Shown here piece after piece: positions 790-47,900 of a stretch of 64,000 nt of DNA. The notes under the pieces are model-generated. The model was not told the origin of the DNA. It did not search any database and saw only the letters and a list, made by a program, of their open reading frames with translations. This DNA is from Takakia lepidozioides (lineage: Eukaryota > Plantae > Bryophyta), in the NCBI GenBank assembly GCA_030704615.1, contig CM060732.1:50344001-50408000 (forward strand), written 5' to 3'. The stretch's first letter is position 1; every line of letters starts with the position of its first letter. Both the position numbers and the translations under genes were made by a program.

Positions 790-3569
790 ATATATATTCT
801 AAGAAAGGGGAGGAAGCCCTTTTAAATTTTATTCGAATTATTTGAGGAAAAATTAAAACCCTGGGGTGCTCGTAGGCTGCCGTAAGGCATGTCTCGCAGT
901 GGGCTGCGCTGGATAACTCTAGATCAATCAAAAGAGACGATGTCGGGACCATTTGACTAAGGGACGAGCCCTAAAGAACAAAGGGCTACAGTGTACTGTA
1001 GCTTGGCTGTTGAAACAGTTACTCTAGGAGGATTGCCGACGAGGACCTAGCAAGATCAAACATAGCGCAGGGATGCAAGAACAATTACCCTAGGTCGGGG
1101 AGGGACCTAGCAAGCTTACTTAAAACGAAAGCGAGAGAAGAGTAGACTCTTATGAGAGAGCCCCTAGATATTTATATATGAAAGTGAAGTCTAGCTGCCG
1201 AGGAAGATCTGATGTGTTTCCAGTTAACCTCCGACTTCTCAAATTCCGGGGAAGCTGAATAGCCTGGCTCTGTGCCCTTGCCAACATTCGGGGTCTGTTG
1301 GGCCACACACAAGAGAGCTCATGGGAGCAGTCACACATGATCCCAAGCTTCCCCCACGTTGATCGGAATGCATGGAGGAGGGCTGGCTAACATTGCGGCT
1401 TCTTGGCGACCTTTGCACACAAAGCCGCCCAAGCCTTTTTAGCTGCCACTGTAAGATCAAAGAAAACTAGAGTGAGCAGCGCAGTGGGAGAGGTATTCTC
1501 ATTGTCCAGGATCCACGCACATCTGATTTTCCATAAATTCCATAGAGTGGTTGTCCTGAGTGTCTTGAAGACAGGGCAGTCCGAAACAATAGCTTTTTGT
1601 CCTTTGTCATAATTTAGGAGAATGGGCATTGGTTGTAAGGGCATGGTGCCCCACGCCACGTAGAATGAGCGCACCAGAGGCCATATAGTGTTAGGTGCCA
1701 CACAGTCAATTAGGCAATGTTCAAGGGACTCTATGATCCCAATGTTGCAACATTGATAGAGTAAAGCCTCCCTGAAGTTCAAGAACTGTCCCACTTTGAG
1801 CACTCTATTGGCCACTTGCCATAGGAAGGCACTGACTTTGGCATATTTGGATTTGTGCCAGATAAGAGACCATATAGATTTCCAGTTTTCATTTGCAAAG
1901 TTTTGGTGACCCCATCTGTCGTTCCATTTCGCATAGAGGGGTTTTGCCCCGAGAAGTGTCTTGTAGGCTTTCTTTGCTGAGAAGGAGAAGATGGGGTGGA
2001 GGTCGTTATCAAATTTCCAATTCCATTCTGTCGGGTCCAGCTGAAGGGATTGAATGTCAGTGCCACCAATAAGGACGAAAGCAACTTTTTGTAACCAAGT
2101 AAGGAGAGGGGAGGTAAGAGATGCCATGGGATCAAGGGTTCTGGAGGAGTCAGACCATAAGCAGATGCGAGCAGGAGAGGCTGATGAGGAGGGGATGGTA
2201 ATAGTCCGGGGAGAAGATAAGGAAAAAAATCCCGAGAGTGTATCTCAGGCATAGAATTCATAGCCAGTAATAGTGAGGGCATTTGTGTCCGTGAGGTAAA
2301 GTACATGGAGTGGGGCTAGATTGGATAGAACCCAATGGTGTGGAGCGAGTGGATAAGACCCATCCTTTAGCAGAAGTTTCCAGGAGTCAGGGATAGATTC
2401 AATGATCTGAGTGATTCCAGACCTGAGACGTCGTGCACCAAGAGCCTGCTCAAGGGATAGGGGGGTGTTGTCCCAAAGATTTTTGACTGTAACTATCCCT
2501 CTCATCTCCCATGCAGCCCATTTTTTAGCCTCACTCTTTGCTTCAGCAGATGGATTTGGAGAATTTAGGAAGATGGGCTGTCTCAAGACCTCATGGAAGG
2601 TAGAAGGGTTTCTTTTAATTAGGAAAGGTCTGAAACAGTTCCACGCAGACCAAATCGATTTCCATAGCTGGGAACCCAGGGATTTGTGGTTGAAACCTTG
2701 AACTATCCAACGTGAGGATGCTGGCCACGCAGTCCCTTGGCCAGGAAATGAAGCCTCAATGGTATTAGCCAGTAATAGCTTCCACAAGCCTCCCTAGCGG
2801 GGGCCAATAAACCTAGGTATCCATTTTTCCAAGGAGAGCTTTTATCTGGGTTTACGGGTCAAGGACTCCTAATCCTTCCATTTTCTTTGGGAGACATATA
2901 TGGTGTCAGGAGACTTGGGGTCTCTTGTTCTCCGAGGAAGAACTGGCTCCCCAAATGAAGTTCCTGGTTAGCCTTTTGATTTCATTGATGAATTTGGAAT
3001 CAGGCCCCCAAGCGGAGGCAAAGTACCAGATACCTGCCATCAGGATCTGGTTCGCCACAAGTGCTCTGCCCGTGACTGAAAGGTGGGAAGAACCCCAGTA
3101 GGCCAACTTTCTTTTAAGCTTTTGTATAGTGGGGGCCATTCTTTGTTCTTCAGTGAGGTTGACCCCAAATGTGTGCCCCAGTAGCGTGGTAGTCTCTCTT
3201 TCTTTGAGCCAAATGAGGGCAAGATGGCCACCCGATGTTGGGGATACCCCAATGGTGGATTTAGAGGGGTCCCCCACGAGAAGGGCTTTTGTCTCCAGTT
3301 GAGTCATGGATTCTGGCATGCTACCTGAAGACTTAATCTTGTTGGCCATGTCACAAAAGTCTTTGGATATAACTGGCCAAAGCTTCTTGTAGAATTCGAC
3401 CGGGATCCCATCCAGGGCAGGGGCCTTGTTGTTGTTCATAAGTTTAAGTGCATCCTCTAACTCTTGTTCAGTAAACTCCGCGAGCAGATTGGGAGAGTCT
3501 GATGGCACCAGTTTTTGGGGGATAGAGAGAAGGCATTGCCTCAAACGGTCCTGGAAGGAAGAGAGCAGC
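790..3569 (-). mobile_element. L1-clade LINE, 3' part of ORF2 (post-RT region, zf-RVT-like zinc finger) plus 3' UTR; degenerate, RT core deleted
   Basis: Minus ORFs 2906-3544 (KAPALDGIPVEFYKKLW...LAYWGSSHLSVTGRALVANQIL), 2245-2787 and 1387-2127 (KVSAFLWQVANRVL...CC...ESLEHCLIDC...LWNLWKIR) are typical of L1 ORF2. Frameshifts lie between them. MPESMTQ joins directly to post-RT sequence and no YADD is present. Confidence 0.9.
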
Positions 3570-7390: not shown

Positions 7391-8315
7391 AGGTAATTAT
7401 CTTTAAAAAAAAAGAACATAATGGCATTGAAAATAGATATTATGTCGACAAGCTCTATGACACAAAAACTTGAGATTTGACCACAAGGTCTTATGCCATC
7501 AATAGCACCATCATTACCACAAGAAATATTGTAAACTAAACTGATTACAAAGTATATATGCTAAGTAGTACAGTATAGTATATACAAGGAACATTGTTGG
7601 CTCCATACCCTCCCTCAATGTACATGTGGATGTGGCGATCCCTTATAGGTGCTGAGCGGAATCTGGCCCCTCCGTTCTAGCGTCCCTCCAAGATGGCGAC
7701 AAGTGGCTCCATCTTGCACACCCTTCCGTGAAAGATGGGCCCACCACATGAACCCCATCTATTTTCAACCTTATTTTCTTTAACCTCATTCGCCAGGCCC
7801 ATTCAAAGTCCCCATTTGGCGATAAATCGCCAATAAAAGAATGGCTACACCAAGGCCCCAAAAACAAATAGGACCATAGCTTATTAATAGAGGGAGTACG
7901 AATGAGAATAATGGCCCCAGGATTGTGTCAGATGTGAAGATTAGAGGGTGGTCCAGGAATTAAAAAGCGGGGATTATAGTAAGCTACACAAGGACTCGGA
8001 TGAATAATCGTCACATAAGGGGGTAAGACAAAAGAATGCAGGAAGACAAGAGCTATTAAATTGGGGATGGTTGAGGTGCTAAATTGGGATAAAAAGGTAT
8101 CAAGTGGTGGTTTTTAGGGGTGACATGTGTCCCAGCCTTCTAGAAGGATCCCACCCAGAGGGTATATTAAGGAGAGGCCCCTTGCCTCTTACTATTTACT
8201 CACTTATTACTTACTAACTTAATAGGCCCCCAAAAAAATTGCAAACCATGTCATGATAAATTAATAGCAGTAGAGCAAATGATGAATAACCCCCACATTG
8301 AGATTAGAGAATTGC

Positions 8316-8397
8316 ATTATAGGGCCCACCCCCCAAAGGGGGCAGTAGCCGCAAGGCGAAGTGGCTCTTAGTTACGCCGGCCGGAGTCTTCTCTCTC
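8316..8397 (+). mobile_element. Short structured retroposed repeat, copy 1
   Basis: Flanked by the 11-bp direct repeat TAGAGAATTGC (8305-8315, 8398-8408) and ends in (TC)n. Homologous copies at 10343-10417 and 32399-32490. Confidence 0.8.
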
Positions 8398-9289
8398 TAG
8401 AGAATTGCCAATCCCCTACAATTTTCTCATGTATGTACTTATTGACATGTGCATGGTGCAACCATTTGGGCAACTACGATCCTCTCACCCTGCATTCTTT
8501 TCATTCGTAATGTCAAGACGTCATCCAAAAAGGCCTACATAACATCCATAGGTCCTATGCATGACGTCAGGTGATGGCCACGTCCCAGTCCTCTACCGGA
8601 CATAAGAGGATCGACTGGGCTCTCCATGACTGGCCCTCCTGGCGGCCAAGACAGGCAGTAGCCGCCACGGAGGAGTCGAACCCACGACGACCCGAATGTT
8701 TGACCATGGTGACCTGCTAATAACCTCAGGTTGGGTCGAAGAAAAGGGTAAAGTTAAAGACTGGATACTTTCGGCGCTTCACACGCGCGAATCCGGATTC
8801 TTACTGGGCCATATGCTGTCTATCTGCGCCACATCACCAATGCGCTTTTGGAAACGCTTTTTGTGATACTATGGCTTTTTTTAATACACTTTTGGAATTT
8901 TAGTATTTGATACTAGTTTCGCTTCACTATATGATATTTATGCAAGGATGGACAGCCTGCTCTTGGGATAATTTACATCCCCCTTTTTTATACAGCTTCT
9001 GAGGCCTCTGTCCCTCTTTATTAAAAAAGAAAAAGAATGGACATCCTCTACGGTTGGACTGGCGGATGCTTCGACCTCAAGTATTTTCCACACTGTAAGG
9101 TGACCCTGATTTGGGGTCAAGCGTAACAAATCACCCTGTCCGATGAGCGAAATCATTCCGATCGCACCACGGTCTATGACTAATGAATCATTATTATAAA
9201 AAGGCCACAGAGGCCAAAAATGCATTAAGAATGTATGGAAAAAGAACCATAGCCTCGAGCCTCAATGATATTTTTTTGGAATGACTTAA

Positions 9290-10030: not shown

Positions 10031-10342
10031 GAATTCAATTGTGAAATAATGTATATGAACAAATAATAAAATAGTATCGGAGCCCATGCTGAAGAAAAAA
10101 GGTCGACAAAGGGGCATGACCCTATATATGATCAGGATGACCAGCGATAGCTAGACACCACACTAACGCAACGAGTTAGTCACCCCGGTTATGCAAACTT
10201 GTAATTGCACAGCTATGTAGTTCATTCATCGGATGGGCAAATTAGTGCGGTCAAAATATGCACCCCAAGTGGTGCAAAAAATTAAAAAAACCAAGCCCAG
10301 GATGCGGGGTGTAGCAGGCTGTCTGAACAATATAGTTCGGAC

Positions 10343-10417
10343 AGAGCCCACGCCTGAAAGGGGGCAGTACCCGCAAGGGGAAAGAGGCTCTTATTTACGC
10401 TAGCTTTGGGCGGCGTC
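10343..10417 (+). repeat. Short structured repeat, copy 2 (diverged)
   Basis: AGAGCCCAC-GCCTGAAAGGGGG-CAGTA-CCCGCAAGGG-GAAAGAGGCTCT-TATTTACGCTAGCTTTGGGCGGCGTC aligns with 8321-8388. Confidence 0.75.
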
Positions 10418-10729
10418 ATAGATAAACATAGTTAGCCAGCATTTGGCTGCTGGCATGTGGGATTCCATACGCTACTCATTTAGGTGGTCGCTTAATTTTT
10501 TATTTTGCATTGAATCCTCCAGGTTGTCGTGACATTCTTGGAAATGCAGGTGAGACGAGGGAATATACGATGCCAATGTCATACGGCTGGATACGTTTGG
10601 CGGAGCCATGCCATGCCAACTTTTGTCAATGACACAAATAAATAAAACATAATTGCGGAACTGGCCACATAAGCAAATAATATGCAGGAAGCGGATCGTA
10701 CCCTTTTCCGCAGCGCAAGAATAACGAGG

Positions 10730-15300: not shown

Positions 15301-16995
15301 TCTTCCTTGGGATGCCCTGACTCTGCTGAAAATGGACATGTACACATGCTAAGCATCCCAGAGACAGAGCTTTTTAAACCATCCAATGTACATTTACCAC
15401 TCTCCATATACTTCTCACCCTCCTCCATTTTTGCAAGTGTGGCAGGTGAGATTGTAATGTGCTCATTACGGCATGCTCTCTTGTTAGTTTTCCCCCTTTC
15501 CCTTATGCTGTGCCAACTGAAGGGATGGGTAGGTACCTCTACTTCATTGTGTACCTAATGCCTTTCCAACTGGACCAGGAAGTGCTCTGATTGGTGCAGT
15601 AGCTTCTGAGGGGATAGTCACATAAGATTTTTTAAACACCGTTGTGTAGTTAGACATTTAGGCATGTTCAGTTAAGTATTGCAGCTCCTCCTAGCAGAGG
15701 TTGTTGGGTCTGTTCAGGAAGATAAAGTGGGTGGCTTCATTGTGGGAAGGTTTGAAAGGCCAAGTTTTGGATTGTAGCCCTTAATTTCACAATTCTTAGC
15801 TTCTGGTTTTGAACACAAACCTTGTTGTGGATCAATCACCATGCTCTCCTGTGACTTTCCCATCTCATTGCATGCATCAAGCAAAGATTGAACATTCAAA
15901 CTCTTTTTTTTTCATTGTCTTGTTTTTGGACGAAAGGGAGGTTGACTACTGCCGAAGCAAGTGTAACTTATGGTGTCACTTGACCCTGATCGGCTTTTTC
16001 CCTTCATCGTTTTGGGATATTAATTGTGCTGACAATGACTAGGATGTTGGATGCATATACAGGTTAGCTCAACTGGTGCTATCTGCTCACTGGTTGATGT
16101 TGCTGGACCTGCTGGTCCAGGGCCACCTCAAACCTCAGCCATTAGTGTAGGGGTGATGACAGGGGCTGCAGCTGGACCTAGTGAAGCCACTAGCATGGAC
16201 TTGCAGTATGTGCCAAGGCCCACAAAGTCAAGCTTGTCACTCTCTATGTCGGGTAGGAGCGGAGACAGCAGTGATTACCACGACTGCAGCGCATCCTCAA
16301 TGCTTGTGAATGGGGAGACTTCATGGTCCCCCACTAGCCCTGACAGTGGAACCCTTGCTCAAGCTAGGGACAGTGCAATGCTTCGGTACAAGGAGAAGAA
16401 AAAGACACGCAAGTATGTGACAGACCTTTCTTGGGCCTTGCTTTATCATTTATAGTCCTCTTTATAGTTTGCCCAGGCCCAAAGCCAAATGTCTTGATTT
16501 TGTTATGATTAGGGGTACAAGTAAATTAAATGCCCATGACCCTTTTACAGTATAGAAAGGACAACATCATTCCTTTCTGAGAGAAGGACATATGAATGAG
16601 AGAAGATGAGGAGAGAATCTGTACTGCATTGGAGACCTTTCTCCCCATTGAATTTATGTTGTGTAGGTATCCGAAATGAGGTAACCATCTTTTTAGATAT
16701 GCAAATTTGGGGTATGATTAACCCACACAGTCTGAAGTGTACAGCTAATATCTGAGAGAAGCACACAGTTTGGAGTCGTGGAGAAATACAGTTCATATGG
16801 TCTGTTTCATTTGGAAGGTGTGCCATGGGTTAAGTAGCACTGATACTTGTCAACTTGTGCAACAGGTTTGAGAAGCGCATTAGGTACGAATCACGCAAGG
16901 CCAGAGCAGATATTCGGAAAAGGGTGAAAGGCCGATTTGTGAAGGCAGGGCAGGCCTATGACTATGATCCCCTCGGTGCTACCAGGAGCTTTTGA
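12311..16995 (+). CDS. COL9: CONSTANS-like B-box/CCT transcription factor (COL9/COL10, BBX7/8-like). Predicted exons 12311-12919, 14529(or 14532)-14921, 15130-15387, 16063-16412, 16866-16995. Probable 5' UTR intron 11301-11960.
   Basis: N-terminal B-box CDFC...[27 protein letters not shown] and a second divergent B-box. CCT domain [16 protein letters not shown]|[26 protein letters not shown], with the C-terminal YDYDPL..TRSF typical of COL9/10. GT-AG junctions have consistent phases; the exon 3 donor is less certain. Confidence 0.92.
12950..13505 (+). repeat. Tandem duplication of ~220 bp in COL intron 1
   Basis: GTGCTGTATTCTTAA..CTCAAGTTGTA..GATATGAAAGCCTCAAA.TCACTGTGAATAATCTAAACTT occurs at ~13010 and ~13335. 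Confidence 0.85.
13506..13930 (-). mobile_element. 5'-truncated non-LTR retrotransposon (RTEX/CR1-L2-like 3' end) in COL intron 1
   Basis: [17 protein letters not shown]...[17 protein letters not shown]-terminal zinc-finger region, frameshifted. (CATTT)n tail at ~13506-13519. Confidence 0.75.
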
Positions 16996-18554
16996 GTGCT
17001 CATGGAGTTCCATACATATATTGCTGGGCATTTTTTAGGGGATTAGATTTTGGCCCAGAGCCCTGAAAAGTCCATTCCCTGCTTTCTTCCTTCCACAATC
17101 CAGTGCCCTTTTTTCCCTCTTTCTTCCACAGGTGTTGACAGCACAGCAGTGGATGAGAGCTTGGGTGCACTTGGTTCGAAGACAACTTCCATGCCAGCAT
17201 TTCTGTGATGAGTGAAGCGTTGGGGTGTACTATATAGCTCAAGTGTCAGACCTCCTTTCTGCAGTGTGAAGGTTTGCAGACTAAAATGTGTTTAAATTGT
17301 ACAATGTGGTATCCATGCAGTCTAGAGAAATTTCTAGAAGCTGAGTGCCTACATTCGGCAACCCTTCTTCTCTTGAGTTGTGAAATATCATTTGCGCCAG
17401 AGGTGTGGCAGGGATCTGTGGGTTTGTGCAATCTGTGGCCCCTTGTGCTTTGTATTGGCTCCTGGTACAAAAGTGACGTTGGGGATTCTTCTATCAAGTA
17501 TCATCCTCTGTCCACTACCAGCTGCTGGGTACAGGGTTGTGCAAAAGTCTCCATCAAGGACTCCCAATGCACCTGTAAATGCAGTGTTTTATACTCAGAC
17601 AAAGTCTCGTTCAGGGGTTGCCTAGCCTGTTTTGGTTTAGTGGATGTTTTGTGCCAATTTTGATCCTTGAAAGCGCAGAGCCCTTGCTTTAATAGGTCTA
17701 CATGTTCTTGTTCATAAATATATGTGCCTACAACGGTATTTGTAAGGCAAGGAAATTGTCAACAAAAGCATCATTCATTGAGCTGGGTTGCTTGGCCCGG
17801 GCTGCGATCAGCTAATGCAAGTACCAGTTTTTATTCTTTGATACTCAGAGGCTTGCTTTGTGAACACATGTGTGACTTATGGAGATTTGAGGCAAGTAAA
17901 CTTCCAGAAACAAAGCATTCTTAATCAGTTGCAAACACTGGAAACTTGACTATGAGGTTGAACTTGGACATGTATGGGTGATTCTGTACAAAAACACACC
18001 ATACCAACTTCATAGCTACTTTGCACAACTTTTCCACTGTCCTCGGACTCTCTGCATGTATGCCTGGTGTGAGAAATGGGTTTGTGTGAGCATGGGGTAG
18101 TCAAAGCAACTCTTCCTGATTACAAATGCTCTTTGTTCCTTTCTAGTCTGCAGTGGATTGCATGCGAGATGCTTGACTATTACTCTGTTTCACTATCTAC
18201 TCTGCTCGCCTAGCATTGCACTTCTGATATATCCTTCTCAGAGAATATATCAGAGATACCCATCTGCTTGGTAATATCTTTGTGAAGCAGCAAACACAGG
18301 CAGTAGTCATGAAGGTACCGTGAAGCTTCTGCAGACAGCAACAGTGTTTGTAAAGCCCATCAAAACAAAGCCCATCAAAAGCCTATCACCTCCTTATAAA
18401 AAGCCTGAATGAATGGGAGAGGATGACTGGAATGGAATTCATCCACTCTCATTGGAAGCTTGAGAAGATCGATAGAGAAAGTGAGAGAGAGAGAGAGAGA
18501 GAGAGAGAGGCGGTAGAGGTGAAGAAGGGCAGGCAGAAACAGGGCGCAGAAACT

Positions 18555-18968
18555 ATGTTCTTGAGAAGATTAGCAGGGCCTTTGCTGGCGGCTGTGAAGG
18601 AATCCACAGGGCTTGTGGGTCTTGATGTGGTACCCAATGCCCGGGAGGTGCTTATCTCTCTGTACCAGGAAACCCTGCAGGCAGTGGAGCCCATCCCTGA
18701 ATCAGCGCAGTACAGAAAATCGGTGGAGTCTGTGACGCAGCACCGTCTAAAGGTGTGTGAGGAGGAGGAGGATTGGGAGAATATTGAGAAGAAGATCGGA
18801 TGTGGGCAGGTTGAAGAGCTCATTGTTCAAGCGCAGGATGAGCTGCAACTTATTCCCAAAATGGTCGAGTGGAAGCCATGGGAGGTTCCCGAAGGTTACA
18901 AAGTAGAGGTGATTGAAGATGATGACTCCATTCCTGCGCACATTCCTATCCATCGGTCGAGATCATAA
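18555..18968 (+). CDS. NDUFA5: NADH:ubiquinone oxidoreductase subunit NDUFA5 (B13), 137 aa, single coding exon
   Basis: MFLRRL...STGLVGLDVVPNAREVLISLY...YRKSVE...RLKVCEEEEDWE.IEKKIGCGQVEELI...WKPW is the plant complex I B13 signature. The ORF is intact and preceded by a (GA)n leader. Confidence 0.95.
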   Translation: MFLRRLAGPLLAAVKESTGLVGLDVVPNAREVLISLYQETLQAVEPIPESAQYRKSVESVTQHRLKVCEEEEDWENIEKKIGCGQVEELIVQAQDELQLIPKMVEWKPWEVPEGYKVEVIEDDDSIPAHIPIHRSRS

Positions 18969-22533: not shown

Positions 22534-23097
22534 CAGTGTTGGAATGGTTTACCGATAAGAAACTGGTATCAATATTGGTATGTATATTGGTATAATGTAC
22601 CAGACCAATCTGGTATCACCTCAGGCCACTACCTAGCATATACCCATATTGGCCTGGTATCTGCTTCTTGATACTATGGACGATACCCTATCAGTCTGGT
22701 GGTTGAAAATTTGGTACCTGATACCAGTACCAGATCCATTTTTCTGAGGTAAACCTGGTATCAATACTTTGGGAACTTGAGGAATACCTTGAGGAATACA
22801 ATCAATGAGAAGCATGATTGTACGCATTTATATGAGAAGTGGGCCTTCAAAATTTAACATATCACGAGACTTTTTGATACCAGACCAGTATTGATAATAC
22901 CCTGGTATCAATTTCTAAAAACTCTTGCCATTGATACCCTAAAACACCACACCTATCAGGTATTATTGATACCACCATGGTATCCAAATCTCAGATTTCT
23001 GCCGATACCAAGTACCTCCCTGGTATCACAATTGGCCGGAGGCCTATATACCAGTACCAGCCCGTTGTGTTCAAAATACGACACCAGTCCAACACTG
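22534..23097. mobile_element. hAT-family MITE
   Basis: TIR CAGTGTTGGA...TCCAACACTG. 8-bp TSD GTGTGTTT / GTGTGTTC. Many internal TGGTAT/ATACCA motifs. Confidence 0.9.
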
Positions 23098-32167: not shown

Positions 32168-32330
32168 ACTTGAGCAGGTAGCCAAGTGGTGGGGTGTTTG
32201 TGCCTTGCCTGTACATGACCTAGGTGATCTTGGGTTCAATCCTTCAGCATGTGCCTTCGGACCGTCCATTGGGCCCTCGATGGCCTGTTGTGTTGAGCAG
32301 TAGGCTCTGTAAATTCTGTAAATTCACTGG
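32168..32330 (+). mobile_element. tRNA-derived SINE
   Basis: A-box-like TAGCCAAGTGG and B-box GGTTCAATCC. Homologous copy on the minus strand at ~49955-50095. Confidence 0.7.
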
Positions 32331-32398
32331 ACGTTAAAGAATCTTTATCTTTATCTTTATGAAGTTGGGTAAGATCCTCGGTTAAATCCTTCAGCATA

Positions 32399-32490
32399 AG
32401 AGAGAGAGAGAAGACTCCGGCCGAAGCCAGCGTAACTAAGAGTCACTTTGCCTCAGGGCTATTGCCGCCTTTCGGGGGTGGGCCCTATAA
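32399..32490 (-). mobile_element. Short structured retroposed repeat, copy 3
   Basis: Reverse complement reads TTATAGGGCCCACCCCCGAAAGGCGGCAATAGCCCTGAGGCAAAGTGACTCTTAGTTACGCTGGCTTCGGCCGGAGTCT(TC)n, with the same 5' start as copy 1. Confidence 0.8.
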
Positions 32491-33092
32491 ATATACCATG
32501 AGATCTTGGGTTCAATCTTAAGCTCCATGAGATCCGGGTTCAAACTTCAAACCGGGTTCATTAATCAAATTGTTAGCATATGCGAATACATTAAGATGGA
32601 TCAAGTATATTTAAAAAATTTATTTATTCTCTTTTACAGGTTTTTAGTGTATTTTTGTTTTAATGAAAATTACTAAAATCCCTGAATTTTAGTTGAAATA
32701 TTTGAATACATGATTATTTAATGTATCAACCAAATTTCTCATATTGATAAAACATTTTAAAACTAATTGGATTAAATAAATATACTTAAAAAATAGAACC
32801 GGAACCTAACCGGAACCGTTAGTTTTTTTTCAGCAACTGACCGGTAACCGGAACCGCCCCCATGTTTAAAAGTTGGATCCGGAACCGAACCGGAACCAGC
32901 TCAATAGGAAAAAGCCGGAACCGGAATTCGGAACCGTCTCTTGAGATAATTGTGGAACATGAATAGAAGGTTCCTTCACAAATGCAAGAACCTCCCAACC
33001 CTGGAACAAACTGAAAACCCCACCTCTGAAAGTGGGGCCGTATTTTGGGCCCCACTCATTAAAAATTCAGTTTGGATTTACTTTGATGAATA

Positions 33093-33592
33093 NNNNNNNN
33101 NNNNNNNNNNNNNNNNNNNNNNNNNNNNNNNNNNNNNNNNNNNNNNNNNNNNNNNNNNNNNNNNNNNNNNNNNNNNNNNNNNNNNNNNNNNNNNNNNNNN
33201 NNNNNNNNNNNNNNNNNNNNNNNNNNNNNNNNNNNNNNNNNNNNNNNNNNNNNNNNNNNNNNNNNNNNNNNNNNNNNNNNNNNNNNNNNNNNNNNNNNNN
33301 NNNNNNNNNNNNNNNNNNNNNNNNNNNNNNNNNNNNNNNNNNNNNNNNNNNNNNNNNNNNNNNNNNNNNNNNNNNNNNNNNNNNNNNNNNNNNNNNNNNN
33401 NNNNNNNNNNNNNNNNNNNNNNNNNNNNNNNNNNNNNNNNNNNNNNNNNNNNNNNNNNNNNNNNNNNNNNNNNNNNNNNNNNNNNNNNNNNNNNNNNNNN
33501 NNNNNNNNNNNNNNNNNNNNNNNNNNNNNNNNNNNNNNNNNNNNNNNNNNNNNNNNNNNNNNNNNNNNNNNNNNNNNNNNNNNNNNNNNNNN
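33093..33592. other. Assembly gap (500 N)
   Basis: Run of n characters. Confidence 1.
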
Positions 33593-33763
33593 AGCAGGCC
33601 GTGGCCTTGTTCAAAGCTTGGAATTGTACCTAATGTCATTCTGAACACTGCCCGGCAGCTCTGGAAAAGGGGAAAGAGATCGACATGTTTGCAAAATGAA
33701 GGCCTTGCTTGGTGCCTGCAGAATCCATGGCAATGTGGAGATGGCTGAACGTGCGGCACGAAG
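33593..33763 (+). pseudogene. PLS-class PPR gene fragment (E-motif region)
   Basis: ALLGACRIHGNVEMAERAARR at ~33702-33764 is the hallmark of the PLS-PPR S2/E1 region. The preceding sequence is frameshifted and cut by the gap. Confidence 0.75.
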
Positions 33764-34439
33764 GTAACCTTCTTCAATCACATTTCACCCTGTTTTTCCC
33801 TGTTACCAGAGTAGTCCCTAAATTTTCATGTTAGAATTTCCTCCTGCAAGTTAGCTCGTTCGTAATGTGAGGTTGGCCATGACTTTTATACAGATCCTTC
33901 ACAATTGTGGGACAACTGCAATCACCAGGTGTGGCTTTTCTTAATGTACGATGTGAAGAAGTTTGTCCAGCCTGCAAAGGTGGGCTCTTGGCTCTTGTGA
34001 GTACCATGATTTGGTATTCTTCCTAATGTTTACAAGGTTCTTGGAAGAGTCAGCTTGCAGGTCTTAGCAGGCTGTGTTTCAATCTCTGCCTCCTCAGCTA
34101 TACCGTGGTGTGTCTCACAGACCAATCTGACATTACCTGACTACAGACAAACAGCACACACAAGAGTCATTTTTTGGGTTGAGTGGTCGGTCAAATCCTC
34201 CATGAGTCAAGGACAATGTGGTGAGGGCACGTTTCACCGCCTGTTTTTCCTCTCATCAGACTTGGCCCTGAGATGCATGTTGAATTTTGCATGGGTGATA
34301 AGTAGGGTTGGGTGTTTGCTGGAACAATTGTAGGCTGTCATTGTCAGCCGCTAGCAGTAAGGGAAGGATGTATGCATGATGTGTGTAGAGCTTGGATAGC
34401 TGAGGGAGCAGGGGTAGAGTCTGGCCGGTCCAGATTCAT

Positions 34440-39079: not shown

Positions 39080-42000
39080 TTAAAACTTGGTATAAAACGC
39101 TGAACTGCAAAATTGGTGAAGACACTGAGCTCTCTTGTCTGTCCAGGTGAGTGGGGTACCAATGACTTGTGACTTGTTCAAGTATTTCCATGCCACATGT
39201 GCCTTAGAGAAAATATCATCAATGCCGAATTTCTGTGTTGACAAATTGTTCCAGGCTGCCTGAAACCATGAACGAATTTGAGAATCGTTTTGCATCATAA
39301 CTTTTGGCTCATATAGGTACATATGAGGTGGCACTGAAGATAAGACCCCATGATCCCCACTGGAATAACTCAGAAAGCGCGCTTGCATCTTTTGCTGCTC
39401 AATGTGATAACGTACCAGAAAACAAGCAGCGTAGTATAATCCACATCCCATGACAATACTCGCTACCTCCTTGGTCTTGGTATAAATGAATCCATGTACA
39501 ACTTGGAAGGCAATTAATTTCCTCAACATTGTACCTGCCTCATGCCAGTATTGTGCAAAGTGATGATCTTCAATTGGTCGATTGTTCGGAAGAACTTTAG
39601 TCCTAGTTGCCACTGGCAGCCAAATGCGCATGATTTGGTAGTAATGTGCAAATGACTGCGGAGGACTAAATTCTTTCCAAGCCAAATCCAACATGATGGG
39701 ATTTGGTTGAAGGGCAGAATCATAGCCCTACTGTACTCCCTTGCAGCTGGAGTTTTAGGTGGGTTAAAAGCAGCATTGCCCCATACCTCAGACTGTGGTG
39801 GCTGTGGTGTAGTTGTGTAGTAACAACAGGGTCAGCTATTGGCACAGTGACTTGCTGTGATGTTGGTGGCACTGGCTCTTGTACCATTGGCATCTCCTGC
39901 ACCTCCTGTGAAGAAGACTGAAAAGCTAAATTTCTCGCTTTTAAATAAGAAGCCATTAGCTGTTCATCAGGTACACAACTCTCTTGTCGATATTTGAAGT
40001 GAGGTCCTCCACTTGAGTCTGCAGGCCGTCTATATCCTCCTGTAACTCCGTTATCCTACTATAGACATTGTCTATAGTAGTTGTGGCAATGTTCTGCACT
40101 TGCAGCCTGAGCTCATTCATCTCGCTTTGGGTGAGTTTTCGTGGTGCTTTGCCCCTCCACTCGCCCTTGTGCTAACCAGACCTGCATAAGGTGGTTATCC
40201 ACCAAGTTGCTTGTGGTTCCTCTGAGAGTGTGCTCCTCTCTTTGTTTGTACACATCTAACTGCTGTTGTAAAGCCTCCATGCGCTTTGCATGAGGTTCAA
40301 CCAAATTCGCATAGGCAGCAGCCAGATTATTGGCTTCCTTCCAAGCTTTGTTAGCCACAGAGAGTTCATTTCTATTGGCCATGACCGTTTGTTGCAACTC
40401 CAGGATGTGCCTCTCTTGGTCAGCTTCAACCTGCCTGTATTGCTTGAAAGTATCCTCATTGCGATAGATTGTATTCTTCATGTCGACAATGAGTTTCATT
40501 TGCTCAACATTCTCTGCTTCTGCCTTCATACTTTTTTCCGCTTGACTGTTTATTTCTATTGTAGATTGGTCAAGCATAGTTGTGAGTGTAGCACACATTG
40601 ATGGCCATCCTGTCATGCACTGTCTGCAACTCCGTATGTAGTGCATTTACTTGTTGGCAACTTGCTTTCATGCTTCATGCTTCACCTGCATTGGTATAGC
40701 TGTTGCGTATGTGCTTCGTGCAACTGGTCTTGCGCGAGGCCTGCCTCAATCAATTGTTCCTTGGCCAATTGCAAAGCCGCTTCTGTATTTTCCAAGTCCT
40801 GCTGCATCTTGAGAGTGACCTCCTCATCGACCTTGTTTGCACACTCAGTGGCTAGTCGAGCCTCAAACTCCTTCCTGAGTTCCTCTCTAAAGGCTGTCAA
40901 TTGGGTAGTTGGAGCATGGATTTGACATAAGTCCCCAACAAATTAAGTGTCCTGCCTATGGAACTCATCAGCATTGCCTGTTGAGGGTCATCATGGTGAG
41001 GTTGCTGCTGCTGTTCCTCCTGATCCTCAACCGTGTGATGTCTCACGAACCATTCAGGCCATTGTCCCACCGGATTTTCTTCCTGAACCACATCATCCAT
41101 CACCGTGCTGCAGTGTCTTGACATTCTACCTGTGGTACCTCCGACACAGGTGTGTGTATTATATGCACCTCAGGATTTCCCTTGGGCAACTGTTGCACCT
41201 CTGGAATCTCTGTCTCCTTGACCAGACCAGAATATTCATAGAGAAGGTCCCCCTTCTCAATTTCCGCCACTATCTGTTCTGTAGTTGGAATATCTAACCC
41301 TTCTTTTTCCAAATCAATTATTTCTGGTTGAGCTGCATGGACAACTTGTAACCTTGTGACAAGCCGATCAGCTGGCTGTGATGGTTGTGATACTGAAGTA
41401 ACTTCCTCCTCCCTTTCTGAAGGTTCTGCTTCCAGTAATAGCAGTTCTCTGTGCTGCTGTGCCCCTTCCTGCACATGAGCTTGGGAAACATTATCATGCG
41501 GAATCCGTGAAGCCAGTGGATCCGCGACTACAGTCTTTACCCGTCTCTGCCTCTTAGTCTTGGGTTGCCCTGCTAGTCCACCCTCACTGTGTGAAGAGCC
41601 TTGCTCTTCCATTGCAATGGTTTCTGGCTCAAACACTCCCATCTCCTTTCTTTCTTGCGCATCAAGTATGCCAGAATCAAGAATTATTTGAGCAATGATT
41701 GGGCCAGACACTATGATAGGAGACTTTGCGGTAGTACCTTGTAATCTTTTCATCTCCTCTACCAGTGCGTTGTACATTATGTCCGCCCATTCTACCTCTT
41801 GTCCTTTCAGGGCTTTGAGTATTTCCTCCGTGAAGGATCTGCTCAAATACTGTTGGTTCTATTTCATGGCAATCAGAACGTTCAATACCTGGCCTACCTC
41901 CTTTAGCCCTGGGTACACGGCCTTGGTACAAGCATAACCCCGAGTTTTAAAGAAACTCCCTTCTTGGAATAAGTCCCCTATTTGCAGTCTTGCCCTGTGC

Positions 42001-42287
42001 TCCTCCACATGCACCTGACCTGCTGGCAATCGAAACAATTGCTGGAGGTATAGGGGAGTAATTACTAATTCAACTCCCTTCACCATTGTTGTTCCTGTCC
42101 TTAGCTCTAAGTTCTGCAAGAATTGTAACATGTACTGTCTATGGTGCAATGTCCAATCTATGCTTTGCAATCCTTGCAATCTCAGCTCCTTTAGTATCTG
42201 TACTGCCTGTGGAGTAACAATCGTTTGTTTCTGCAGGATTGTGGTGCTCTTCACCCTGATTTCCTCCATTCCTCTCACTCTCTTCAT
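39080..42287 (-). pseudogene. Accessory ORFs between pol and the 3' LTR (Athila/Tat-type extra-ORF domain, coiled-coil segments, unknown 204-aa ORF)
   Basis: Same-strand ORFs 41859-42287 (QFLQNL...VKGVELVITP..LQQLFRLP), 41100-41846, 40682-41124, 40113-40646 (heptad-rich) and 39080-39694. Confidence 0.6.
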
Positions 42288-42989
42288 TCTAGACCCATAG
42301 AAATGTTTTGGCTATAACAACTGAAGAAATGCCTGTAGTGCACAAAGCATAAACGTATGGTTGCCACAAAAAGCTATGGGTAATTTCTTGTAAGCCTGTG
42401 GGGCTTGCAAGCATCGCTCAAGAGAAAAGATCCGCTCTGTTGTTTCGTCCCTATGCCACTGCGTAAGTAGTATTGCAAGCGTATAGTCTGTTAGTTCCTC
42501 CATAGCTTCAAAGCTATCGCATTGATGGTTTGTCCCTTCGCGACACCCGTTACTTAGAACGTCGCCGTCTCTTGCGCCTAACTCCCCTCCAATTTCTTGA
42601 TCTCTTCTCTGGCTTTTGATTGGCTGTAACCGCTGTGACTGGATTTTTGATTTAATGTTCTTTAGTGGACTTTCCCTGCTGGACTGTCCACTAGGATTAC
42701 ACATATGACAAGAATTTCGCTTTTCTGTACTTGCCGTTTGTTCCGTTCCCCTTTTTCTGTATTCATTAATGGGCCCGCCATTCATCCGAATTGACGAGCT
42801 AAGTAGGTACTTTGACGGCCATTCTTGTCCTCTTTCTTGATGACACCTGTTCTTGCACTTCCTTCTCAGCTGTGTGTCGCGCCCTGACTTCCACGTGTCT
42901 ATTTTTAAACTGGTTTCCGTCCTTTCCTCCGTCGGCCATTTTCCTGAAGTTAATGTGCGTCCACCTGTCACTGATTCTATGGATTGTGT

Positions 42990-43210
42990 AACCCTAGTAG
43001 GCTGTGTCATACTGTGGTACGCTGTAATAGGATATGATGCATGTGGTAAGCTGTGATAGGCTGTGACACGCTGTGGTAGGTTGTGATAGGCTGTGTTGCG
43101 CCGTGCTGGGCTGTGATAGGCTGTGTCACGTCGTGATAGGTTGTGATAGGCTGTGTCACGTCGTGATGGGCTGTGGCAGGCTGTGTTGGCTGTGATGGCT
43201 GTGTCACGCT
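42990..43210. repeat. GCTGTG(ATAG) minisatellite downstream of the integrase, related to CACAGC/GCTGTG tracts in both LTRs (35190-35465, 38265-38560)
   Basis: CTGTGATAGGCTGTGTCACG-type units with a period of ~30 bp. Confidence 0.85.
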
Positions 43211-44936
43211 TGTTTTGCCCGCCTTGGTCATATATGCTCGGCCTAGCGACAAATGCTCCATACTCCGTTCGTAACACTGGTGCAGCCCGTGACTGCTCTT
43301 GCGTTTCAACATGCAATTCATGCTGCAATGGTTTGTCATGGATACCACTGTACCCCTTCAACTTATTGGCATTGACTCTTCCCAGCATTTCTTTGTTAAT
43401 GGTTTGTAACATGGCGGTGTTGTTATCATACATCTTTTGTATGGCATAAGGTCTTTTCCATGGTGATTTAAGCTTATAAGCTTTAATCTTTCCCTTTTTC
43501 TGCAACCATAGAACCAAATCTCCCGTCTTAAAAGTTTTTAACTTGCCTTCATCAAACTGTTCCTTCCTCTTCATCTGAATTCTGGTCATATTATCAGCTG
43601 CATCAGCACGTACTTCTTCCACATGGTATAATTCATGTTTCCTGACCTTAATGGAATCTTGCAATTCCATTCTCTTTCCCCACTCCGTTCTCATGGTAGG
43701 TAACAGGAATTCCACTGGAAGTAAGGCTTCCATACCATAAACTAATTGGAATGGTGTATACTTAGTGGTGACTTTATATGAAGTCCTGTATGACCACAAA
43801 GCTGTCAACAGCTTTGTATCCCAATCCGTTCTGTTTGCATTGAATCTTAGCCAAGATAGTACATAGTATTTTGTTGGTAGCCTCTGCCTGTCCATTACCC
43901 TGTGGGTAATATGTTGTACTCTTCCTATGCACAATCATGAATTCTTTAGTCAATAATTCAATGGTCTCATTAATGAAGTGACTTCCCTGATCACTGATAA
44001 ATTCTAAGGGACAGCCAAATTGTGTGAGTATGTTCTCATATAGAAACCTTGTTGTGGACTTGGCTGTGTTTTCCCTCAAAGCTTTAGCTTCCACCCATTT
44101 CGTAGTATAATCAGTGGCTGTAATTATGTACCTGTTCCGTGTATTCTTGGCTGGTGGGTTGATTGGTCCAACAAAGTCTAGTCCCCATTTCTGAAATGGT
44201 TCCGTAGGCATTGTAGGATGCAAGGCCATCCTTCCAGATCTCTGCAAAGGCCCTAGCCTCTGACATTCATCACAACTCTGACAATACTCGTGTACATCTT
44301 TGAACAAAGTAGGCCACCAGTAACCTGCGAGTAGTAGCTTCCTACTGGTAGTCTCTTCTCCAAAATGACCTCTAGCCACTCCTTTATGAACTTCCTCCAA
44401 AACTTTATTTACTTCATGGTGGTACAAACATCGTTTTAGTACTCCATCAGGTCCTAGCTTATACATTCTGCTTCCTACCATAGTATAAGGTAAAGCTTTG
44501 ATAGCGATTCTCTTCCTCTGCTCCTTACCATAACTAGGTGGGCATTGACCATGAGTAAGGTAGTATCTGATTGGCCACTGCCAATCTAACCATTCATCTG
44601 CACTTCCTTTCACCTCCATTACAAATAAACTCGCATCAGGTAACTGATCGTCCACTCCTGTGGCAGCCTCTCCTGTTGTTAGTCGTGACAAATGATCTGC
44701 CACAAGATGCAAACGGCCAGGTTTGTAAATAACTTCGAACTCAAACTCATGCAAGATTATCAACCACCTCGCTATCCTTCCACTTATCAAAGGTTTGTTC
44801 ACCAGATATATCAGAGCCTGGTGATCCACATAAAACATAAACTTTCTTCCCAATAGGTAATGCCTGAATTTCTTGACTGCATAAATCATTGCCAGTGCTT
44901 CTCTTTCAGTTGTGCTATAGTTCCTTTCAGCACTGT

Positions 44937-47900
44937 AATATCAGGAAGAATACGAGATCACGGTACGTCTAACAGGAGCCAAGAGCCCGCTTTTGCAGGA
45001 TGGACAAACTTCTTCACATTGTACATTGAGAAAAAGCCACACCTTGCGATCGCGATCGTCCCACCATTGTGCATGCCTTCATGCCCCGATTCTAGGGCTT
45101 GAGTCTATGTCTGCCCCCCCTATCCCACCAGCTCCACTCGTCATCGTACATTGAGAAAAAGCCACACCTTGCGATCGCGGTTGTCCCACCATCGTGCATG
45201 CCTTCATGCCCCGATTCTAGGGCTTGGGTCCCTGTCTGCCCCCTATCCCACCAGCTCCGCTCGCCGTCTCTCATGATCAGACTACAGTACATGAGGTCTC
45301 CCATATCCTTCAACAAGTTTATAGCGGTCACCGGATCCTTCGTTTTCTTGCATGATTGCTTCACCCATGCCTTGCGGACATGCCAAAGGCAGAGGAAAAT
45401 GAGTACTCATTCAAAAACAATTCTGCACAACACACATGGTACACATTAGAGTCTTGGGATCGGCCTGCAATGGTGGACTGTAACAACGACTTGTATCAGC
45501 GGGCAGAGCCACTGGACTCGCCCAATGGACAGTACAATGCCATGACGTTGATGTGCTGGAATAACCCCATTGGACTACCCAGTGGACTTCCCCATTGGAC
45601 TTCCCCTAGCTAGGATTGGGGCAGCGGACTGCATCAGCGGACTGCCCCATTGGACTGCCACAACGGACTGCCGAGTGGACTTGGCAGCGGACGACCAACC
45701 CCAGGGACTGCTGAGTGGACTTGGCAACGGACTTGGCAGCGGACTGCCAGCGGACTTGCCAGGGGACTAATGAGCGGACTTGACAGCGGACTACCAGTGG
45801 ATTTGCCCAGCGAACTGCCATCGGGTTTCGCCACAGGAGTCTGCCAGTGGACTGTAGCAATGCATGGCTGCAGTGGACCTCGACGATGGACCGGTGCTGT
45901 GGACCAATAGACTTACCGAATAACGTTGATTTCTGCTTCGGCATCGTCCACAATGAAGGCATTGGGTCGCCAGCTCGGCAAATCTGCGAGGAGTGAATCG
46001 CGCAAGGCTCTCATCCACAGAACCAGTTCTCTCGTCCGATTCCTCGCGGATAGGATATAGACAACTGGTATACCGTTCAACCACTCGTCGAAGACCATCA
46101 ATGTGTACAATGGGAACTGTTGGAATGCACAATGTAAGATGGTCAGAGCATGCAAATTCCGCTTAGTTCTGCACGAGAAGACTTCATAAGAGTGATGAGG
46201 TCTACAGCGGTTCACAATGGGTCTGCCCCTCGGTCTTCCGCAACGTACACATGAAAACATACAGAAAGGGTCAACATACCAAATTTTATGTGAATGTTGC
46301 ATGGTACTATGCTATCATGCTCGTACAAGTTCATGGAATCGTTCGAATAGTACCTTGTCATGATTTGTCCCAAAGATTGCATCACATGCAACGATACGGT
46401 CATGTCCTAGTTCCAACATTCGTCGTTTCTGCCATGGAGTCTGTATGCCAATAGTGAATATCAAATCTCCATCATAATGCTCGAATGTTGGCTCTAATTT
46501 CTCCTCTTGATAGAAAAAAACGGACGCAGGATTCTGGTCTCTCCACATGCGCACACTCTCCGCATTATCGCGCGTGCTTTTTGAAGGTTTGTCACGCACG
46601 TTTCTCGGCAAGGTTGCGAACATCTTGTTCCAACAAGAAATCATCGCGGGTCCATGCATCGCCCAAGCCGGTGTTGTTCATCACGTGCTCTTTATGCTCC
46701 ATCATGATTTGGGCGACCGACAGGCCTCGGCACAAACACTCGACGACCCAGGCTTTCAATTCCTCGCTAATGGTGCATAGGCGTGGCGGGTGTTCCTGAA
46801 CTCTGCGGACTTCCCATGCGAGGGTTTCCCTTGCGCATCTGTATGCTCCATGTTGTTGTAGTACGTGAGGACACAGATGTCAGGGGCGAGATAGCATTGC
46901 TGGACCTTGAAACAGCATTGACAACCACGCTTGTAAGACTCTCCATACTCTGACTTCTTTCTCCTTGGGCCTTTATGAGGGCAAGATGTTCCAGCACCCA
47001 CAAGAGGTCCTCCACGCTTCTGTTTTGGATCCTCCACTATTGCCTTGTTGGTGCACTTGTCATCAGGACCGTAACAGCATTGATACCTGGACAGAAAATT
47101 CTAAAATCGATATCCAACAACTTGAGGAAGCATAAAATCAGAGAACTCGTGAAACAAAAAATGGCAACAGACATGCAATGAAACGTCAAAAAGACTGAGG
47201 ATGGACACATAATACTGGATATAAATATGTTGGCTCTGGGTGCTTTTCGCGAGCCGGGTTCCACTTTAGAATGGACATTCACCCAAAACTGAGTGGGGTA
47301 GTCCTCCAAACTCTCTTCTCCCAGGACAAAGTCACCAACTCTATCCCAAGGTATGCAGGCCTTTTCAACATTCACTCGCACACCCATAAACCCATATTGC
47401 GTCTCACTCTTCCAATGGAGATCCTTCCTGTTGAAGGGTCCTGGTTTTGCTGTTTGCAAACATTGTCGAAGAGGCCGTATAAGCGGGCTTTCCGTGATCA
47501 GTATATCATCGCCACGTCCATGCCATATACAGTACAAATGACACGCTTCTGAACCTGCAAGAAACGCGCCGCAGTACAGGACACGATCGACAACGTGCCA
47601 GGAGAACAGTGCGCACGTTCGTGGCTGCTGGCAAGTGGCAGGCGGTAGGGATAAAGGTTTGAATTGCAGCCCTAAAAATGCAGGGCTCGGATGTGTTATG
47701 TTGGACGGTGGTGATCCTGCGCCGTCAGCGGACTGGATGGCAGGGGACTGGCGGGCAGACTGTTGGGCAGCAGACTGGGCAGCAGCGGACTGGCAGACTG
47801 GAGGGCAGCGGACTCATGGGCGGAGGACTGGCCGCGCGGCGGACGGGGGCACGGGCGCGGTTGCTGCAGCCGCGCCCGGGACTGGGCGGGGCGGGCGGGG

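Follow-up and report, generated by a model that had tools for sequence, protein, structure and literature searches.

The eel elements UnaL2 and UnaSINE1 are a LINE and a SINE that form a stringent-type tail pair. Tails of the stringent type consist of a terminal stem-loop, a few conserved bases on its 3′ side and a repeat tail, and are recognized in trans by the LINE reverse transcriptase (PMC3747384). The plant L1 lineage has a conserved 3′ hairpin and is likewise of the stringent type (PMC3747384). Microsatellite tails are found in the RandI/Dualen LINEs, whose SINE partners have an unknown head; the Chlamydomonas elements SINEX-1_CR, SINEX-2_CR and SINEX-4_CR combine such ‘unknown’ non-tRNA heads with RandI-2 or DualenCr3 tails and end in (ATT)n or (CTTT)n (PMC3747384). 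Drosophila suffix is a short retroelement that occurs as separate copies and also as the 3′ end of the F element, a LINE (PMC1868783, PMC3136478).

The family described here, three copies of which lie in a 64-kb stretch of bryophyte DNA (the window, meaning the whole of the DNA that was analysed), is most likely a headless form of this known arrangement of tails shared between SINEs and LINEs and not a new class of RNA. Specifically, these abundant headless retroposons of ~82–92 nt probably represent a LINE-type 3′ recognition module alone, copied in trans from a discrete RNA. The module would be ordered as a GC-rich junction domain, a terminal UUCG hairpin, a conserved GAGUC block and a (UC)n microsatellite tail. 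Copy 3 displays the anatomy of a stringent-type tail as CUGGC-UUCG-GCCGG, GAGUC and (UC)n, and the family consensus continues likewise. The first-pass annotation had described a short, non-autonomous retroposon of unit length that lacks a tRNA or pol III head, and this part of its reading stands; the accompanying label of a ‘new structured retro-RNA’ is overstated, because the anatomy is that of a stringent-type LINE/SINE 3′ recognition module.

With stringent-type tails the element shares the stem-loop, the conserved block, the repeat tail and the target-site duplications (TSDs). It differs from them in its longer module, in which a three-way junction is proposed to precede the terminal hairpin, and in having neither a SINE head nor a LINE body. 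Compared by anatomy, not by sequence, it resembles the Chlamydomonas SINEX and RandI elements in its green-lineage host, its lack of a tRNA head and its microsatellite end. In SINEX elements, however, a body precedes the tail, whereas the bryophyte element is apparently the tail alone and ends in (TC)n. Drosophila suffix overlaps the last conserved reverse-transcriptase-coding domain of F; the element here is shorter, non-coding and far more numerous. Like the tRNA-derived plant SINEs Au, p-SINE and TS, it is short, dispersed, flanked by TSDs and presumably mobilised in trans, but those SINEs contain both an A and a B box and have tails of poly(A), poly(T) or LINE origin, and here the head is missing. 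The features to which we refer below are as follows.

8305 to 8315, plus strand: 5′ TSD of copy 1, TAGAGAATTGC, an exact 11-mer with its second instance at 8398–8408, both adjoining the element
8316 to 8397, plus strand: copy 1, a headless 82-nt unit (covariance model 95.5 bits) without 6 nt of the terminal hairpin that are found in other family members
8321 to 8368, plus strand: proposed three-way junction in copy 1, hand-drawn and not the predicted optimum
8321 to 8326 paired with 8363 to 8368, plus strand: proposed outer stem of copy 1
8329 to 8342, plus strand: proposed hairpin 1 of copy 1
8343 to 8361, plus strand: proposed arm 2 of copy 1, made of C, AGUA, GCC-GCAA-GGC, GAA and G
8377 to 8397, plus strand: 3′ end of copy 1, in which what is left of the terminal hairpin is followed by conserved GAGTC and by (TC)n
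8398 to 8408, plus strand: 3′ TSD of copy 1, TAGAGAATTGC, completing the exact 11-bp direct repeat
10329 to 10337, plus strand: probable 5′ TSD of copy 2, AATATAGTT, a 9-mer with one mismatch to 10425–10433
10338 to 10424, plus strand: copy 2, a headless 87-nt unit (88.4 bits), the most diverged copy, with a C-G swap in hairpin 2
10425 to 10433, plus strand: probable 3′ TSD of copy 2, AACATAGTT
15939 to 15995, minus strand: possible old partial relative, 3′ half only (74.5% over 51 nt, E 6e-4; uncertain)
32399 to 32490, minus strand: copy 3, a headless 92-nt unit (104.5 bits) with intact CUGGC-UUCG-GCCGG and the longest (TC)n tail

The three dispersed copies that had been annotated (8316–8397 and 10338–10424 on the plus strand, 32399–32490 on the minus strand) are genuine relatives of one another: BLAST within the 64-kb window aligned them at pairwise identities of 76–84% with E values of 1e-11 to 1e-20 (84% between copies 1 and 3, and 84% across 58 nt between copies 1 and 2). 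A covariance model built from these copies and applied, unfiltered, to the entire window recovered all three at 88–105 bits and yielded no further convincing copy. Its match at 22591–22660 was rejected as unrelated sequence. Its match at 15939–15978 (minus strand; 14.3 bits, E 0.03) is a doubtful partial relative, in which the UUCG hairpin has U-A replacing G-C and no TC tail follows. The same model found no LINE or SINE bearing the module as its tail in the 64-kb window. An L1-like LINE fragment at 1387–3544 (minus strand) was considered as a tail partner and rejected, its 3′ similarity to the element lying within the range of shuffled sequences (score 36, against 26.9 ± 4.1 and a maximum of 42.5 for shuffles; not significant).

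Upon comparison of their ends, all three copies display a common 5′ boundary, each beside a flank of its own. The sequence TTATAGGGCCC opens copies 1 and 3, as had been noted from the start, and copy 2 starts one base before GGACAGAGCCC, which is the same place within a few bases. The 11-bp TSD reported for copy 1 is an exact repeat flush with both ends of the element, where ~5e-4 chance repeats of that kind are expected in the space searched. The imperfect 9-bp repeat around copy 2 (~0.24 expected by chance) is weak alone, and its position is that of the homology boundary. The flanks of copy 3 contain no clear TSD; this copy is inserted among GATTGAACCC..GATCT units, which form a short tandem-like array on both sides of it. 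At the 3′ end, the GAGTC block followed by (TC)n was found as annotated in copies 1 and 3, but not in copy 2, which has no (TC)n tail and ends in GTCATAGATA instead. Copy 3 has an intact cUUCGg hairpin, again as annotated, and is the only copy to do so; copy 1 is short by 6 nt there, and in read contigs other family members have the insertion CGGCTT behind 8377 relative to it. The two ends of the element, TTATAGGG... and ...GAGTC(TC)n, are not inverted repeats of each other. A MITE or other DNA transposon was rejected on this absence of terminal inverted repeats and on the TSDs, which are 11 and 9 bp long and unrelated in sequence. Rather, duplications of variable length, a simple repeat at one end only and the lack of inverted repeats argue for a retroposon inserted by target-primed reverse transcription.

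To follow the family beyond the window, we placed on 8216–8500 the contigs of two DNA runs (X4 and X1) and of two presumed RNA runs from the same organism. The DNA runs contributed 2,164 and 1,714 contigs on the element. In X4, the summed word depth over the core (8346–8365) was 552,809–568,758, compared with 73.7 on the single-copy flank, and in X1 it was 184,214–193,486, compared with 24.3. Both DNA runs thereby give core equivalents of ~7,700–8,000 times the single-copy flank, a summed depth that is to be read as an order of magnitude and not as a copy number, and that fits three copies per 64 kb. The family is highly repeated, beyond chance, in the organism’s own reads. Elsewhere, JGI metagenome contigs scanned for an exact pattern gave two matches only, both by chance and in unrelated sequence, and pattern scans of prokaryotic genome contigs and of viral contigs returned no match.

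The point of interest in these data is the precise 5′ end of the headless units. The best-supported 5′ breaks fall at 8317, 8318 and 8319, with 75, 45 and 73 contigs in X4 and 86, 47 and 68 in X1, and any other 5′ break position in X4 has fewer than 29 contigs. Upstream of these breaks the contigs agree with their consensus at 0.36–0.43, which is about the value for unrelated AT-rich flanks. As a reference for homologous continuation, the loose ends behind 8381, the site of the 6-nt deletion in copy 1, read TTTGGCCGGAGTCTTCTC and agree at 0.61. On the other side, 3′ breaks lie at 8396–8398; behind 8398 the TC run goes on in the read contigs, and divergence follows beyond the TC repeats. One contig of single-copy depth contains a tandem pair, in which the second unit runs from 8320 straight after the (TC)n of the first. 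With at least 190 contigs per run breaking at 8317–8319 into unrelated sequence, the unit-length 5′ end is real, and a unit with a defined 5′ end is present in unrelated flanks at ~190 loci as a minimum, with many more likely. Contig counts of this kind favour unique junctions, so that a homogeneous headed SINE or LINE could hide as a few deep contigs. The proposal of a unit-length element, as opposed to random 5′ truncation, is thus borne out by a sharp boundary whose breaks lie within ~3 nt. Taken together with the TSDs and the simple-repeat tail at one end, this boundary identifies a short non-autonomous retroposon of defined unit length.

The anatomy of the unit suggests how it may be copied. 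The reverse transcriptase of a stringent-type partner LINE would bind the module on an RNA, prime on or beside the (UC)n tail at a nicked target and copy to the 5′ end of the template, and this target-primed reverse transcription would produce the 9–11-bp TSDs. From the coincidence of 5′ ends within ~3 nt at many independent loci we infer that a short, discrete RNA serves as template, as opposed to a product of random fall-off of the reverse transcriptase. Such an RNA would probably be cut from longer LINE, SINE or host transcripts that bear the module. A bolder version, which we consider unlikely, takes the ~85-nt reverse transcriptase handle to be a self-sustaining promoterless retroposon that is released by precise processing 5′ of the outer stem. 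Release would then depend on a cellular RNase or on self-cleavage by the junction domain, an activity not yet described, and the LINE would copy the released minimal template thousands of times. In the two presumed RNA runs no free RNA of ~85 nt was seen; the element is embedded there in longer contigs of 0.3–2.2 kb, which indicates only that copies ride in other transcripts.

A discrete template has to be weighed against the possibility that the units are ordinary by-products of the copying of LINEs and SINEs, the reverse transcriptase frequently halting or changing template just past its own binding module. There would then be no discrete RNA, and the family would not be self-sustaining. Most copies of most LINE families are indeed 5′-truncated, at 100–1,000 bp (PMC3747384), the unit has no promoter, and the depth in read contigs drops from the core towards the 5′ end, reaching 1/6 to 1/3 of the core depth across the first 20 nt. 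This lower depth indicates that shorter or 5′-divergent relatives exist as well. Random truncation, however, does not pile up within 3 nt, whereas the breaks at 8317–8319 hold ~190–200 contigs per run, and the boundary is common to all three copies in the window. Longer copies would, moreover, give a common upstream consensus, where the agreement is just 0.36–0.43. We regard the by-product explanation as rather unlikely. The precise 5′ end and the high copy number are also SINE-like, and a classical SINE would rely on an internal promoter for RNA polymerase III within the 85 nt. Further traits of SINEs are present too, since the element is short, non-coding and TSD-flanked. Copy 1 contains an A-box-like site (8354–8364; 10 of 11 consensus positions). 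A B box with at most 2 mismatches is absent from every copy, as is an A-plus-B pair, which is missing from the 120 nt upstream too. The A-box-like site is unmatched in copy 2, with more than 2 mismatches, and has 2 mismatches in copy 3, and 37 A-box matches of like quality occur by chance in the window. It also lies ~39 nt from the 5′ end, and the usual distance of an A box to the start site is much shorter. ARAGORN found no tRNA in the window, and a search of Rfam at E ≤ 10 with each copy and the upstream regions returned noise only, without tRNA, 5S or 7SL similarity; a SINE head in the strict sense, that is an internal pol III promoter of tRNA, 5S or 7SL origin, is absent from the copies. 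A tRNA-like head upstream of copy 3 was rejected, because its B-box-like GTTTGAACCC recurs downstream too and belongs to a local repeat of the host. A pol III SINE is on these grounds very improbable.

A precise 5′ end without a promoter could likewise be made by a self-cleaving ribozyme or another RNA-processing signal in or adjoining the module, in which case any transcript with a copy would release a mobilisable RNA. The embedding of copies in longer contigs of the presumed RNA runs accords with this, as does the proposed three-way junction topology with GNRA-type loops, in which both common loop-2 variants keep the GNRA pattern. Type III hammerheads and plant retrozymes similarly have a three-helix junction with two capped hairpins. 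Their conserved core is absent here, however: as the first-pass annotation had observed for CUGAUGA, the junction strands read CA, CAGUA and GAAGU, and the CUGANGA/GAAA core is missing. Rfam contains no hammerhead match to the element at E ≤ 10, and covariance models of HDV-like, twister, pistol and hatchet ribozymes gave no match even at this threshold. A hammerhead-like cut would, in addition, fall inside the element, between the outer stem and hairpin 1, and not at the observed 5′ end. We judge it very unlikely that such a signal makes the 5′ end. Finally, the units might be retropseudogenes of a structured small RNA of the host, without any transposon module. They are short and GC-rich with hairpins closed by tetraloops, and no known transposable-element protein or head was matched. 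Against such an origin, the thousands of copies, the microsatellite tail and the conserved block directly before it are features of LINE tails, and the element matches no described Rfam family, the whole window being without a match at the gathering score. We give this explanation hardly any credence.

Our preferred reading, in which the module alone is copied from a discrete RNA, has consequences for how LINE enzymes select their templates. If the headless unit is the template, the minimal RNA that a land-plant LINE needs would be ~85 nt long, with no promoter and no body. The unit would then provide a compact natural substrate for studying RNA recognition by stringent LINE enzymes, and a case for how a promoterless retroposon amplifies to thousands of copies. 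Should the self-sustaining version be true, the element would be the smallest known autonomous-template retroposon, possibly with a new RNA-processing motif. For genome annotation, several thousand 85-nt units lie across genes and other transposons, and SINE finders keyed to A and B boxes easily miss them.

The RNA fold of the module had been presented as a covarying multi-stem structure in which all copies fold the same way. Its named helices can be drawn, with 90.6% of 53 pair cells being standard, but copies 2 and 3 contain 5 broken cells. When the partners were slid out of register, standard pairs reached at most 62%, a control that is weak, because the structure was derived from the very same three sequences. 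Contrary to the claim of a common fold, each copy has a minimum-free-energy fold of its own, and none of the three matches the drawn one. The drawn fold lies 5–10 kcal/mol above the optimum in every single copy, and 1.7 kcal/mol above it in the three-copy majority sequence (z = −0.66). Against dinucleotide shuffles, the folding z-scores of the three copies are −0.3, −0.6 and 0.0, and folding single sequences on either strand gave no signal, with the antisense strand performing no worse than the sense strand. The compensatory change described in hairpin 2, a G-C to C-G swap in copy 2, is real, but as the one double change in 19 pairs of three sequences it is not significant (161 of 500 shuffles are as good). 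Covariation across multiple stems thus comes down to one compensatory pair in three sequences with folding energies like those of shuffles. The doubtful fourth copy (15939–15995, minus strand) offers a possible second double change, from G-C to U-A. In the details of the fold, the GAAA loop given for hairpin 1 does not hold for copy 1, whose loop is CAAA. The loop E/sarcin-ricin strands read AGUA/GAA in copies 1 and 2 and AAUA/AAA in copy 3.

The variants seen in read contigs allow a second view of the fold. Common family variants are C>T at 8350, 8352, 8357 and 8375, G>A at 8358 and 8371, and A>G at 8353; the share of G>A at 8358 is ~6–15% across the four runs. Both loop-2 variants keep the GNRA pattern (GCAA to GUAA, 20%; GCAA to GCGA, 10%), and two common stem variants yield G-U pairs. 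These changes are compatible with a constrained fold. Four of the seven common variant sites, however, are CpG positions. We therefore rejected selection at the RNA level as the reading of these variants: the 10 paired G positions, none of which varies, all lie outside CpG, so that methylation-driven decay, with variable CpG sites and unvaried paired G elsewhere, explains the pattern equally well. A three-way-junction fold, which is typical for such tails, is plausible for the module as a model, here without statistical support.

The surroundings of the copies are land-plant nuclear DNA. Besides the L1-like LINE fragment with its zf-RVT domain, the window contains a Ty3-type integrase, purple acid phosphatase exons, an ABC transporter exon and an NDUFA5 ORF. 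Two ENA contigs that carry the nearest Ty3 integrases (L003 and L004; 43.5 kb) contain no copy of the element. The best relatives of the Ty3 integrase ORF are just 50–55% identical to it. Moss sequences are nearest to the NDUFA5 ORF, the best named match being in Sphagnum balticum at 82%.

The window holds several other features beside the short headless retroposon (~82-92 nt).

Annotated features of the window (coordinates, strand, description)
1387-3544, minus strand, degenerate L1-like LINE fragment with a zf-RVT domain in its last ORF
18423-18968, plus strand, apparently intronless ORF of 181 aa for the complex I subunit NDUFA5, with the Pfam domain at residues 66-132
32786-32926, a cluster of AACCGGAACC / GGTTCCGGTT motifs arranged as 32-39-nt direct repeats, adjoining the AT-rich stretch around copy 3 of the retroposon
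39080-47537, minus strand, element of the Ty3/gypsy type, whose RNase H-integrase ORF lies at 43774-44889
42312-43934, another ORF of the Ty3/gypsy-type element, 540 aa, without a Pfam match

In the L1-like fragment, frame changes interrupt the ORFs upstream of the zf-RVT ORF, and the retroposon shows no significant similarity to the fragment's 3' region. The integrase of the Ty3/gypsy-type element is only 50-55% identical to its closest counterparts in public data, which come from ferns, liverworts and ENA contigs.

A short way 5' of copy 1 of the retroposon (8316-8397, plus strand) lies another short repeat, unrelated to it, at 8246-8295; its summed contig depth in the two DNA sequencing runs reaches ~45 times that of the single-copy flank. 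Copy 3 (32399-32490, minus strand) is inserted in a short tandem-like array (32490-32570 and 32220-32400, viewed on the minus strand), whose units resemble GATTGAACCC(A/G)(A/G)GATCTCATGG; the 2-kb stretch that encloses the array has a G+C content of just 32%. At 32950-33777, ORFs overlap on both strands, which suggests low-complexity sequence.

About 90 nt from a doubtful fourth copy, a possible old partial relative comprising the 3' half only (15939-15995, minus strand), the plus strand reads GGTTAGCTCAACTGGTGCT at 16062-16080. This stretch resembles the 5' portion of a tRNA, A box included; it is oriented opposite to the tail-like sequence of the doubtful copy, and ARAGORN made no tRNA call there.

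Because the database match covers ~75% of the NDUFA5 ORF and the homologues in moss and liverwort measure 134-154 aa, compared with its 181 aa, the ORF carries ~45 surplus residues, apparently at its N-terminus. Its top named match is from Sphagnum balticum (82%).
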